DNA from: Oculina patagonica
Lineage: Eukaryota
Assembly: GCF_052425735.1 (NCBI RefSeq)
Contig: NC_135765.1
Location: forward strand, 16,368,001-16,432,000
DNA length: 64,000 bases
Reading direction: 5' to 3'
Shown here: piece after piece, positions 32,001 through 64,000 of the stretch
Layout: each line of letters begins with the position of its first letter
How positions within the stretch are numbered: the first letter of the stretch is position 1
The notes under the pieces: generated by a model
The model's input: the letters and a program-made list of their open reading frames with translations, nothing else
The model's database searches: none
Told to the model about the DNA's origin: nothing
Position numbers and translations under genes: made by a program

Positions 32001-35000
32001 CTGCCGAATATGCAACTACGTATACGATCAAAGCCAATTTAATTTTATGTACATATTTTGAGACCAAAAATATGGAAACAGTCCGGAGTCCTCACGGGCG
32101 CCTCTCTTAATTCGTACAGAAGCCGAGAAAGAACTTCGGACTTCGGACCACGGAATCCATCAAAGGGTAACTCCCACTAGCCTGATTTCGTCCGATTGCT
32201 CTAAAAGTGCTAGTTGGTCGCTTTTATTCACCTGAGTTAGCTGGGTAGATAGACGGTGTGAGTGCATGAGCTATAGGATAAGTGGAGTTTTTCAAAGTTA
32301 AAAGCCAATATCTTACCACTAAAGTCTTTTCTTTACTACTCTGTTTACTTCTTTCGTTGTTCGATCACAATACATGCGTAACCAGGCTTTTATTCAACCG
32401 AGAAGACCTGAATGCTAAACTAATTTGCATTTGGAGTGCCCCTGGCCACTCCCCGAAAAAAGCACCATTTCATGCCTTTGGGGGTAGGTATTCCTACATG
32501 TGGACCACTAAGCTAATTTGCATTTGGGACTATGTGTATAATGCCATGGGTAGGAAGATAATCCCTTCATTCGTGTGGAGTTCGTAAGATCCAAAGGTGG
32601 CCATTTTCCTTATAAGGAATGTAAAGGTGGCCCACCTGGGGGTTATACAAAGGAAACCATTCATTCACACAGGGAGTGGGATGAGGTCAACATGGGCTTA
32701 CCCGATTTCGCGACGATGAATTGGAGTTAAGAACTATTAACATCACCTTTGAAGTAAATTGAAATAATACAGGCTCGCTGGCTCGCCCTTTTACTACTTT
32801 TCTTTTTTTTTTTTTTACTGTCATAATCTGACGTTCTAATGTTGAGAGAAGTAGTGAGTGGAGAAAATAAAGTTTTATCGGCTACATTCCAGAAACAGTA
32901 GTGGATTCTCCGACGATAATAAATTGCACGCCGCATGTAAATAATTGTATTATATATACGAGTCGAAAACATTAAACAAAGTGCTCTTACAAGCTTAAAT
33001 TCGTCAAAAAACCTGCGTAAAAACTAACTCACCCTATGCGGAAATTTTTCTTATTTATTTTATTTCAAAAACTCAGTCATAAAAGCCGATTTTTCGAAGC
33101 TTAAATATTCACAGCAACAATCAGTGAATAGATTTGCATATTCATATTTGTAAGTTGTTACCACACAAACACACGCATAGAGTTGAACACCTGTGTTTTC
33201 CCGTTCATGCTACGCCGGTTAAAAGTCACTCGTTGCTTGTTTATGCAATTTAAGACAACCCCAGCTTACTCCATAGCGAAAGCCTTCAAAAATAACGACA
33301 ACGGCCACAAAACTATCCGAAATTTACATTTCTTTTCCACCGTTGAGTTGCGAACACCTACAAAATAAACCAAAATTCATTTTCGGTTGCCAAACCTTTC
33401 TTCTTCCATGTGGGGAAAGGCTCAAGTTTTGTCGCCTTTTTCATTCCTCACTAGGGGATTGAGAGTGCTCGTTGATCTTACGAGCTCAACACGAAATTGA
33501 AAAACAATACCCATTGTTTGTTCGGTTTAGTGATTGGCCAAAAAACAAAATCTCCTAGCAACAGTAAAAGTTTTTCCTACCCAGTGTTTTTGTTATTCGC
33601 CGTAACACCAAATGCAAATTAGTTTAGCATCCAGGTCTTCTCGGTTGAATAAAAGCCTGGTAAACCATGTGTTGCGATCGAACAACCAAAGTAGAAAACA
33701 GAGTAGTAAAGAAAAGACTTTAGTGGTAAGATATTGGCTTTTAAATTAGAAAAAAACTCGACTTATCCTATAGCTCATGGTGAGTGCTAATGTCGTGATC
33801 ACTTGAAGGTCTCAACTCCGTGCCTCACGATCCGACGATTTAGTCACCGCCGCTCTCAGCCAACGATCCTGACAATAAACCATGGTTTTGTGTTTTATGT
33901 TTCAGTTCTACGAGATCACAGTAATAGACTCAAATAAACACAAGTATGTTTCGGTGAGCAGAACGAAAGCTACTCAATTGATAATCAAGTGTGCTGACCT
34001 TGTTCCCGGGAAATATTACATTTTCAAAAGTCGCTGTAAGGCGCTATGTGGTTTTGGACCAGATAACCTCGCGGTTGGATACTATCCTGGTAAGTTAAGT
34101 TTTTTATCTGGTGTAAAATGACGTAGTCATGCTTACACATGTGGCCTAACGCCGCGCAACTCACTCAGTGCACTTGAAATGTTTGTTAGCTAATTTGAAC
34201 AACCATCCTCTATTTGTGTGTTTACAACTTGCCAGTGGAATGGTCTTATTTAGATTTCTTCATTAATTGGTATTGTAGATATAAAAGCTTTCTTAAATCT
34301 GTATTTACAGCCGTTTATTCTGCGCATTGTTTAAGTTCGTTTTTCAACAGTTGTGTGTTTTATTTGCTGACTCGCTTTCTTGCACATGATTACTTACATA
34401 AGGCATGCAACTTCGAGACCGAATGATCTGTTGCTGCCGCCGAACTTAGTGAAACAAATATATATTTTCTCGATTCGCCTTTGTCAGGGCTTCGGGCCTC
34501 AAAACATCCGCCTTCAAATTATACTCTGGTCTTATTGCATTAAGTTCGATAATCCTTTTTTTTAACTAGCCGGAATTAGTCAAAATTACTGTCTGTAACC
34601 ATTTCCAGAACCAGTGACGCCATCACCAAGAAGGTCGTCACCAACGCCATCCAGGACACCAACCATGCCATCACCATCCAGGGAACCAACAAATCCATCA
34701 CCAAGTAGGTCGTCAACAATCAAGCCATCGCCATCCAGCTCTAGGAGACCAACCATGCTGTCACCAACCAAACTGTTTACGTCGTTGCCACAGATAAACA
34801 ACAAGAGCCATCACCATTTTCCCTACTGGACAATCCCCACGGCCATTCTTGGCGTTATCCTTGTCATAATCGTGGTTTTTTTCGTTTGTAACAACTACCG
34901 ACGGGGAAAGCGTAGAAGTTCTGCGGAGAACTACTTTCAAGATACTACAAAGGACACCTCTGAAGGTATCTGCCAATATCTGGATTAATGATATATGTTG

Positions 35001-35742
35001 TGTTTAGAACCGGTTAAGACTTGCCTCTTTAGATGTTGCATGTATTCAGAATCCCTTGTCAGATTGCAAATAGTAATCAAGGTGAAGGAAATGCAGTTGT
35101 GACAACTTTAATTAAACGTGCAAACTTAAGGAAGACTATACTTCCGATGTTCCTCTTTAGTCCTCAAGTAGAAATCTTTTTTGCGACCAAAAGTTCTTCC
35201 TTTGGCTATAGCAGTTACCGTAGCCGTCACCTCGGAACAGTTTGACTGAGCTGAAAAAAGAAACTTAACGCTCAACGGCACTTGACGATGTAAGGAAAAT
35301 GGCAGTGCGGGAACGACCTTTGTTCAAACATAAATTTTGCCTTCTTTGTCTGTTTAATTGATGTTCACTGTCATTCGTTTCACTTGTTTCACTGAAATTC
35401 ACTAACTTCGTGATCACTTGCCACCAAGATGTCGGTTACCTTCGGTTACTGAGCTAAACCGTGCCTGCCGAGCTAGGCATCTATCTGTCGACAAACCTGG
35501 GTTGGCTTATGTTTGCCGATATTTACGGAGGCTTAGTACAGCGTTTACACGATTTAAAATTTCACTACGGTCTATTACGTAAGTTTCAGTTAAAACAAAA
35601 CCTAGTTGAACACCGTTCGTGAAAAGACGGGGTAAGTCTTTTTACTTCCTATTAAAATCATTTTTATTCCTTTTTTGCAGAGGACGAAATGCCCATCTTG
35701 CTGGAAAGCCTAACCGATGATGAAATGCTCATAACAGCTTAG
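14155..35742 (+). CDS. Gene A: type I membrane protein with signal peptide, furin propeptide, 8 FN3 domains, P/S/T stalk, TM and acidic dileucine tail (SorLA/SORL1-like termini)
   Basis: Phase-consistent GT-AG exons: 14155-14442, 21853-21925, 23361-23455, 24151-24328, 25241-25347, 25723-26019, 26411-26701, 27149-27445, 28679-28987, 30455-30745, 31353-31667, 33906-34089, 34609-34965, 35681-35742 (3144 nt, 1047 aa). FN3 signatures LxWxxP, YxVxW, YxFxVxA, GxG. RFRR|S at aa 76-80. TM WTIPTAILGVILVIIVVFFV. Ends EDEMPILLESLTDDEMLITA*. The exon 1-2 junction spans an N gap. Confidence 0.85.
14793..17945. repeat. Old tandem duplication in gene A intron 1
   Basis: 14793-14945 resembles 16312-16460, and 16150-16275 resembles 17816-17942. 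The second copy is interrupted by another repeat at ~16465-17578. Confidence 0.7.
14985..15355. mobile_element. TTAA-flanked MITE (Kolobok/piggyBac-type target)
   Basis: TTAA-GGGACTAAGTCAC...GTGCCATAGCCCCT-TTAA, imperfect TIRs. Confidence 0.6.
18790..19115 (+). repeat. (CCATA)n microsatellites with a retroposon-like 3' tail (18917-18978)
   Basis: Pentamer arrays at 18790-18825 and 18978-19115; the array resumes at 21268-21422. Confidence 0.85.
19116..21267. mobile_element. ~2.15-kb non-autonomous DNA transposon inserted in the (CCATA)n array
   Basis: Ends CATGACGAGCTT and AAGATCGTCATG (11/12 inverted match, weaker similarity further in); ATACC on both flanks. Confidence 0.65.
19968..20490. 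repeat. 72-bp minisatellite, ~7 copies
   Basis: Unit CTGGGGTAGCAATACCTGATGGTAAAAGTTTAAC...CCTTTACTGT recurs at 20049, 20121, 20193, 20265, 20337 and on. Confidence 0.9.
21268..21422 (+). repeat. (CCATA)n microsatellite
   Basis: Pure and variant CCATA/CCACA units running into the gap. Confidence 0.95.
21423..21665. other. Assembly gap (N run)
   Basis: 243 N. Confidence 1.
23645..23750 (+). mobile_element. Degenerate tRNA-derived SINE head
   Basis: Eroded A/B-box-like region followed by CATTGT.TGTTCTTG..CAAG.CACT. Confidence 0.4.
29350..30313 (+). mobile_element. hAT transposon remnant with a decayed dimerization domain
   Basis: 29560-29735 reads LLRLNLTLLVASATFKRTFSALRRLKNNP*STMKPDRLNCLVMHCHK (ERxFSxLRRLK..STM..RLN motif); G-run and C-run at the two ends. 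Confidence 0.7.
31003..31190 (+). pseudogene. Frameshifted, truncated duplicate FN3 exon (pseudo-exon) inside gene A
   Basis: Good acceptor; NYLVTIECPRCGSFEPTTKKVINQTSYTQILP, then +1 shift to SGQSYVFTVRAV..; aligns to exon 31353-31667; no canonical GT donor at its end. Confidence 0.75.
32265..33779. mobile_element. P-element/Galileo-like non-autonomous transposon with long TIRs
   Basis: CATGAGCTATAGGATAAGT ends, ~170-bp TIRs; 7-bp TSD GTGAGTG at 32258-32264 and 33780-33786. Confidence 0.85.
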
Positions 35743-63799: not shown

Positions 63800-64000
63800 G
63801 TAATTCGTATTTGGTACTTCAAATGCTATGAGGGATTGGAGTTATAGTTGAAGCCCACACTGGCTTGGAAATATGTTTATTGTTTGTAGTTTGTTTGTGC
63901 TATGGTGGTGACAGTGGCTTTTCCCCGTGCCAATTTCAGTAATGGTGCAATAGGTATTTGGGCATTGCACATGCAATACTTCTGCAATTTTCTCTCCTAC

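Follow-up and report, generated by a model that had tools for sequence, protein, structure and literature searches.

Sequence comparison across a 64,000-nt stretch of a 529-Mb animal genome (G000:C8:16368001-16432000, hereafter the window) confirmed that the middle one of three neighbouring genes is a derived chimera. The genes, termed A, B and C, all lie on the + strand in the order A-B-C, and B reads as a C-type promoter and exons 1–3 joined to an A-type stalk, transmembrane (TM) segment and tail. We consider it likely that B was made by one tandem segmental duplication that ignored gene boundaries, the joined unit forming the in-frame B gene. An earlier note on this DNA had proposed a C-type 5' end and an A-type 3' end for B; this assignment, with B as the derived gene, is borne out by collinear copies of the DNA involved, by a C TM/tail almost unrelated to that of B and by an A 3' end that is native, as in a paralogous locus termed E. 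A further 180 kb to the right of the window were taken in, and "ext" coordinates above 64000 continue the window numbering. Locus-wide DNA comparisons covered this 244-kb locus, and single-copy status was taken from whole-genome DNA searches.

Self-BLASTN, together with a more sensitive run, revealed two collinear copies of a block that are offset from the gene boundaries (34609–43568 and 49957–64013; BLAST identity 70–78%). As the earlier note had described, the block is out of register with the genes, extending from the A stalk/TM exon to exons 1–3 of the next gene. The two copies are as follows:

34609–43568, + strand: copy 1 of the block, containing the A stalk/TM exon, the A last intron and last exon, the A–B intergenic DNA, B exons 1–3 and 173 bp of B intron 3 (BLASTN and Kimura two-parameter (K2P) distances).
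49957–64000, + strand: copy 2 of the block, from the B repeat array onward through the B–C intergenic DNA and C exons 1–3; it runs to 64013, 13 bp past the window end.

Six collinear self-BLASTN pieces link the copies, spanning 34619–43448 and 50712–63852 with E values from 5e-17 to 0:

34619–35268 = 50712–51358: collinear piece 1, 77.3% identity, E 1e-144.
35264–35955 = 52207–52923: collinear piece 2, 78.3% identity, E 3e-171.
36153–36350 = 59357–59551: collinear piece 3, 78% identity.
37348–37540 = 59868–60036: collinear piece 4, 70% identity.
40495–41340 = 60943–61776: collinear piece 5, 72% identity, E 2e-148.
41889–43448 = 62333–63852: collinear piece 6, 71% identity, E 0.

The last piece was lengthened to 43568 = 64013 in the more sensitive run. 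The left edge of the block lies inside the upstream gene (A stalk exon, 34609/34610) and the right edge inside the downstream gene (C intron 3, 64013), with B–C homology ending in intron 3, 173 bp past exon 3. From its second base, 34610, the A stalk exon aligns to several registers of the B repeat array, the first being 49957–50143, and the A intron upstream of this exon gave no BLASTN alignment in B. Similarity between A and B begins inside the repeat, as had been claimed.

Divergence is even along the block. K2P distances, computed on gap-free columns, are 0.22 for the stalk/TM exon with its intron, 0.20 for the 3' flank (0.196 at lowest), 0.23 and 0.26 for two intergenic pieces, and 0.21 and 0.29 for two pieces of the 5' module. 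Synonymous divergence (dS) is 0.37 between A and B (TM and tail) and 0.32 between B and C (exons 1–3). Divergence this even from the 3' module through the intergenic DNA to the 5' module fits a single event. Two insertions are specific to copy 2:

51358–52207, unstranded: an 850-bp element with ~330-bp inverted ends (inverted repeat 51358–51689 / 52208–51878), inserted in the last intron of B and not in that of A.
52924–59356, + strand: a long terminal repeat (LTR)-retrotransposon-like insert in the B–C intergenic DNA, not in copy 1, filling the gap between collinear pieces.

The 850-bp element has a 94% copy at ext 84837–85694, and the LTR-retrotransposon-like insert contains Pfam matches to zf-CCHC, aspartyl protease, RVT_1 and RNase H. 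At 35989–36098, shortly past the 3' end of gene A, a G-rich tract (GGGGGAGG-like) of ~110 nt sits between two collinear pieces and thus lacks a counterpart after gene B.

Gene A, from which the 3' module of B appears to come, is built as follows, P/S/T denoting units rich in proline, serine and threonine:

14155–14466, + strand: gene A leader exon.
~23.3 to 34.1 kb, + strand: gene A FN3 exons (Pfam fn3).
34609–34965, + strand: gene A stalk and TM exon, phase 1 at both ends, with ~5 P/S/T units followed by the TM segment and the start of the tail.
35681–35742, + strand: gene A last coding exon, ending ..DEMPILLESLTDDEMLITA and a stop; acceptor, frame and stop are conserved in the A/B alignment.

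The stalk exon is bounded by the acceptor ccatttccag|AA and the donor GAAG|gtatc, and Tandem Repeats Finder (TRF) reports a 27-nt unit repeated 2.1 times within it. A third copy of the A/B-type TM exon, at C8:16598286, is part of the large paralogous locus E, ~180 kb away. In locus E, C-like LDLa and six FN3 exons (ext 168.1–179.9 kb) come first; next, at ext 196.7–237.5 kb, are an FN3 series, an intron, a stalk/TM exon and a 3' flank that resemble those of A. Its stalk exon uses the A acceptor (ccatttccag|AACCAGT) and has ~2 repeat units, and the FN3 body, intron, stalk/TM exon and 3' flank of A are collinear with it. Because the A-type 3' module natively follows an A-type FN3 body in E, A keeps the older layout and cannot be the recombinant gene. 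The TM exons of A, B and E are mutually 83–86% alike. Over the alignment columns common to all three, A and B are nearer to each other than either is to E in every region: distances for A–B, A–E and B–E are 0.159, 0.171 and 0.194 in the TM exon, 0.29, 0.67 and 0.79 at the start of the last intron, and 0.175, 0.221 and 0.292 in the 3' flank.

Locus E as a whole spans ext 152.7–237.5 kb (C8:16520700-16605500), with YWTD (Ldl_recept_b) repeats at ext 152.7–154.1 kb. Its LDLa and six FN3 exons are collinear with the C body, and its later FN3 series, stalk/TM exon and 3' flank with the A body; this layout makes A and C look like separate cuts from a single longer receptor, their order being reversed in the window. 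An A-like leader exon, D, lies at ext 80165–80473, 88 kb upstream of the E LDLa exon, and has 55–62% amino acid identity to A exon 1.

Gene C is represented in the window by its first three exons:

61016–61297, + strand: coding part of gene C exon 1, an exact match to predicted protein P0003, with the donor read from the sequence.
62913–62984, + strand: gene C exon 2 (P0003; splice sites read from the sequence).
63727–63799, + strand: gene C exon 3, 73 nt, ending in phase 1 like B exon 3 (P0003).

Past the window, C continues with an LDLa exon, six FN3 exons, a stalk/TM exon of its own (ext 71119) and a tail whose last residues are ..SSKTER (open frames; Pfam Ldl_recept_a and fn3). The gene model is intact and equals the predicted 638-aa protein P0003. 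The C TM/tail exon (ext 71119–71500) matches B over 24 residues of the TM segment at 54% identity, around a PYW.I motif (41% over 32 residues in the genome search), compared with 75% between A and B over the whole stalk/TM exon. The earlier note had held that a C TM/tail closer to B than that of A would make B and C plain duplicates and A the recombinant or converted gene; C is clearly the more distant. In the P/S/T stalk of C there is no tandem repeat, and its DNA is not similar to the A/B tract. Directly upstream of the C stalk exon, ext 70214–71101 is repeat-derived, with long open reading frames (ORFs) that have no Pfam match, and its end (ext 70953–71101) is 82.5% identical to ext 208995–209126; the original C intron is therefore hidden at this point. 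At the 5' ends of the genes, BLASTP gave no alignment between the first exons of A and B, which the earlier note had called barely alike, and aligned those of A and C over 30 residues only (E 0.003), with a short shared LFG..RSLNP motif.

The elements of gene B are as follows:

40492–40796, + strand: gene B exon 1, with the transcript start at ~40492 (RNA contigs of 4 runs, with a cDNA-adapter loose end at 40492), the ATG at 40566 and a signal peptide.
42422–42472, + strand: gene B exon 2, a mini-exon (joints 40796>42422 and 42472>43323).
43323–43395, + strand: gene B exon 3, 73 nt, ending in phase 1, with a KRRFKREK basic cluster (joint 42472>43323).
43569–49819, + strand: junction interval within B intron 3, mostly multi-copy repeats (43575–45700, 46353–46493 and 46657–49378).
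49820–51064, + strand: gene B stalk and TM exon, with a unique start (49820–49956), a P/S/T array (49957–50869), the TM segment (50926–50985) and the start of the tail.
52645–52706, + strand: gene B last coding exon, ending ..GDLPILLENLADDEMLLTA and a stop; acceptor, frame and stop are the same as in A.

Past exon 3, the only coding pieces of B are the stalk/TM exon and the last exon; the interval 43569–49819 contains no LDLa or FN3 frames or similarity. Over the 218 nt that follow the repeat, the stalk/TM exon is 85.8% identical to that of A, and the last exons of both genes encode a [DE]xxxL[LI]-type motif and end in DDEML.TA. A strong phase-1 acceptor is found at 49819|49820, with two further phase-1 acceptors at 49856 and 49913, and the exon starts given in the earlier note (34609 in A, 49820 in B) fit the sequence. 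The stalk-exon acceptors of A, B and C are all phase 1, as is the end of B exon 3, so that a join of 43395 to 49820 would give G|CA, encoding Ala, followed by ILSPSTQ. The five-exon coding sequence assembled in this way is 1662 nt long, an intact 553-codon frame with a single terminal stop. Its predicted 553-residue product would begin with a signal peptide and a short acidic/basic leader, continue as a mucin-like stalk of ~380 residues and close with a TM helix and the tail of A; it has no globular ectodomain. The array comprises ~30 units of 27–30 nt (TRF), compared with ~5 in A and ~2 in E, and P, S and T make up 72% of the stalk repeats; a block of near-identical 30-nt units suggests recent growth.

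Exons 2 and 3 of B (42422–42493 and 43323–43395) and of C (62913–62984 and 63727–63799) are internal duplicates of one 72–73-nt unit, an acidic stretch followed by a basic cluster (KRGK, KRRFKREK). B exon 2 here uses an early donor at 42472; in gene C and in an RNA contig from a relative (X9), the donor lies ~21 nt further on.

RNA contigs from four studies or runs, viewed over a 6-kb stretch that holds B exons 1–3 and leaves the stalk exon outside, show exons 1–3 spliced at GT..AG joints (40796>42422 and 42472>43323), along with a form that skips exon 2. In one contig, X7 record 17, the match to the genome breaks off precisely at the exon 3 donor (43395), and the next 46 nt of the contig come from outside 43396–46399. 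We infer that exon 3 is spliced to the stalk exon and that a spliced B protein is made, which might act as a membrane mucin or as a competitor for the partners of the A tail. In the TM and tail, the ratio of non-synonymous to synonymous divergence (dN/dS) between A and B is 0.35 at a dS of 0.37, with 7 synonymous and 10 non-synonymous changes on the B branch and 5 and 8 on the A branch. For exons 1–3, dN/dS between B and C is 0.62, and B exon 1 shows additional deletions when compared with C and with the copy of a relative. At 41400–41900, in B intron 1, RNA contig cover is very deep (depth in the hundreds) and rich in variants and loose ends, probably from a transcribed high-copy repeat that does not belong to B.

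A genomic contig of a relative (L023, GCA_044670265.1, 6958 bp) aligns to the 5' modules of B and C and to both intergenic copies; its 2.6 kb of upstream sequence contain no A-type 3' module. Its distance K is 0.14–0.19 to C and 0.19 to B, compared with 0.22–0.25 between B and C. As L023, B and C are three taxa with no root, these values do not date the duplication against the species split.

The ancestral locus would have held two type I membrane genes, A and C, side by side. In ancestral A, a leader would have been followed by FN3 exons, one exon for the P/S/T stalk and TM segment, and a short exon for the tail; ancestral C would have had a different three-exon leader, an LDLa exon, FN3 exons and a stalk/TM exon of its own. 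An interval from the start of the A stalk exon to at least 173 bp into C intron 3 would then have been duplicated. Tandem placement would leave A and C whole, while the C-type promoter and exons 1–3 of copy 1 would meet the A-type stalk, TM segment and tail of copy 2, giving B. With two units, each a 3' module, intergenic DNA and a 5' module, in tandem between the A body and the C body, the gene that crosses the unit boundary, B, must be the new one. The reading frame would have survived because all introns involved are phase 1, and B would have used an acceptor in single-copy junction DNA, adding 46 new codons. Later, the P/S/T array would have grown from a few units to ~30, and transposons would have filled B intron 3. 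Recombination mediated by transposons was set aside, since neither parent keeps the transposon copy that such a model needs: C 64001–64620 is single-copy, and the A intron before the stalk exon is common to E.

Several observations weigh against this account of B. The single-copy parts of B intron 3 (45701–46352, 46494–46656 and 49379–49819, ~1.2 kb in total) have no match in the A, C or E introns or anywhere else in the 244-kb locus, and their origin is unexplained. The same holds for the start of the B stalk exon (49820–49956, AILSPSTQ...), which, as the earlier note had stated, has no counterpart in A and which is unique in the genome; near this start, QLQSS aligns weakly and in frame to ELPST at the start of the C stalk exon (12/15 nt). 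The right edge of the block, 43568, lies only 7 bp from a young transposon cluster, whose other copies are 88–94% identical. Contig X9 record 25, from a relative and 90–95% like B, reads through the exon 3 donor to 43575, its frame stopping 4 codons past exon 3, and then enters non-transposon sequence. The first 30 letters of this loose end occur nowhere in the locus or in the rest of the genome, even with 3 mismatches allowed; they contain two short collinear matches to the C intron, 8/9 at 64021–64029 and 11/12 at 64084–64095, which are suggestive, and the block may once have reached further into C. On the side of expression, no read or contig was seen to link exon 3 with the stalk exon, in an RNA view whose 6-kb stretch spanned exons 1–3 and was shorter than the 6.4 kb between the two. 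A spliced B protein was not found in protein databases. A search restricted to the B TM/tail returned nothing within the length range searched, searches with B exon 1 returned only an unspliced Logan ORF (P0001) and the exon-1 ORF of a relative (P0002), and a B/C leader profile run against 1.84 billion proteins returned the C protein itself and exon-1-only ORFs of other assemblies, with no full-length relative.

These last observations leave room for a reading in which the duplication is the same and B is chimeric in its DNA only: short transcripts ending in intron 3 would encode a secreted leader peptide of ~125 residues, and the A-type stalk, TM segment and tail would be a silent relic. The read-through of X9 to an early stop makes a short secreted product a live alternative or an additional isoform, the databases lack the spliced protein, and the openness of the array proves little, as its other frames are open too. 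Yet X7 record 17 departs exactly at the exon 3 donor and runs on, the phases match, the acceptor at 49820 is strong, and the TM segment, tail and last exon keep frame and stop at the dN/dS given above, the B branch being no more relaxed than the A branch. We regard a relic as possible but doubtful.

The earlier note had derived B from unequal crossover between the repeat tracts of A and C. This mechanism is probably wrong in detail: C has no tandem repeat in its stalk, B has no LDLa or FN3 exons, and B–C homology ends in intron 3. It could be rescued by letting a homologous crossover between the P/S/T tracts be followed by a ~7-kb deletion of the LDLa and FN3 exons from B. The non-A start of the B stalk exon and the in-frame QLQSS/ELPST alignment lean this way, the lack of intron homology just upstream of the C stalk exon is uninformative because that intron is repeat-derived, and B–C homology stops exactly at a transposon-filled scar, past which contig X9 seems to continue collinear with C. 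However, two events are needed in place of one, and the C stalk offers no tandem repeat or detectable DNA similarity to the A/B tract for pairing. A crossover in the C stalk exon would also have carried the LDLa and six FN3 exons into B, where no remnant of them is found. The similarity of the exon starts is itself marginal. The C stalk exon, expected by the earlier note to begin like AILSPSTQ, begins ELPSTQPS; a weak resemblance stands, with a DNA score of 15 against a null of 10 ± 1.4, but 2 of 400 random acceptor-like windows score as high and about ten comparisons had been made. A crossover followed by deletion thus appears unlikely.

Far less probable, and largely refuted, is the reading of B and C as plain full-length duplicates, with the 3' end of B converted from A, or that of A from B, and the B body lost separately: gene conversion is common between tandem paralogues and the A, B and E TM exons are all alike, but similarity runs unbroken and at the same divergence through ~4.5 kb of intergenic DNA into the 5' module of the next gene, which conversion of a gene end would not copy, the A 3' end is native and collinear with E including the intron, and the C TM/tail is unrelated to that of B.

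Chimeric genes arising from one tandem duplication across gene boundaries, the origin favoured here for B, are documented in Drosophila (PMC5460883). As in B, the duplicated stretch there takes in the 3' portion of the gene upstream and the 5' portion of the one downstream; the two parents are left whole, and the middle gene combines the downstream promoter and 5' exons with the upstream 3' exons (PMC5460883). Unlike the Drosophila case, B is old (K about 0.25) and apparently fixed rather than a segregating variant; it loses every globular domain, would recruit 46 codons of junction DNA, and carries a coding repeat that then expands six-fold or more. A new gene between two tandem genes, with the 5' end of one parent and the 3' end of the other, is also the outcome of unequal homologous crossover between tandem paralogues, as in haemoglobin Lepore/anti-Lepore, GYPA/GYPB and the red/green opsins. 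Such hybrids arise by homologous pairing and so keep the full exon set, whereas A and C have no alignable DNA at the junction and B is missing the entire middle of each parent. Exon shuffling through symmetric phase 1-1 introns is well known for extracellular modules. The three stalk-exon acceptors and the ends of B and C exon 3 follow this phase rule, and hence a join from an intron to an exon edge stayed in frame; in contrast to the usual case, B represents the loss of modules and not their gain.

For the parents, the C-terminus of SorLA offers a lead that A, C and E may belong to the SorLA/SORL1-like receptors, a family with a VPS10 domain, a YWTD propeller, an LDLa cluster, six FN3 domains, a TM segment and a tail with acidic sorting motifs. 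Points of likeness are the LDLa that precedes FN3 repeats (as in C), the TM segment, a short acidic tail with the ending DDEMLxTA, and YWTD repeats upstream in the paralogous locus. The fn3_SORL1 match is weak (Pfam, E 0.012), PDB phmmer matches are to generic FN3 and LDLa domains, and, unlike in SorLA/SORL1, no VPS10 domain was seen, although no genome-wide search for VPS10 was made. Predicted B itself resembles membrane-tethered mucins in its signal peptide, long P/S/T tandem-repeat stalk and single TM segment, a likeness read from the predicted sequence only; it differs from them in having no SEA or other mucin domain (Pfam) and in a stalk that comes from the linker of an FN3 receptor.

The creation of a new gene by a tandem duplication that ignores boundaries is a kind of event already well known, and B opens no new kind of biology. 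It offers a datable example in which a duplication through two neighbouring receptor genes yields, at a single stroke, a third gene whose architecture is new: B keeps leader, stalk, anchor and tail and has no ligand-binding domain, and uniform intron phase lets such accidents stay in frame. We suggest, tentatively, that B is a maintained new gene, a stalk-only membrane mucin with the expression and secretory leader of C, the sorting tail of A and a coding part recruited from non-coding junction DNA, and that it is one instance of a locus-wide, perhaps genome-wide, reshuffling of phase-1 receptor modules in this coral, with A, C and E as different pieces of a longer YWTD-LDLa-FN3 receptor. As a spliced gene, B seems to lack annotation, and A, C and the distant paralogue E are best modelled together in annotation.

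Further features were noted in the window and its right flank. The long early intron of A contains (ATACC)n microsatellites at 18976–19115 and 21268–21422, the latter abutting an assembly gap (N run) at 21423–21665, and a 72-nt tandem repeat of 6.7 units at 20011–20491. A large foldback occupies 3613–6797, its inverted arms (3982–4755 versus 6532–5753, 94.6% identical) carrying arrays of a 40-nt tandem repeat. In the flank, two large Polinton/Maverick-like elements lie at ext 99–140 kb; besides long capsid-like ORFs, they carry a chromodomain-bearing rve integrase and a protein-primed DNA polymerase B (Pfam DNA_pol_B_2, E 1e-46), and stretches 99085–101323 and 121752–124000 of these are 94.7% identical. 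On the − strand, an open frame at 57–461 encodes an immunoglobulin V-set domain (Pfam E 2e-7) and is probably an exon of an unrelated gene.

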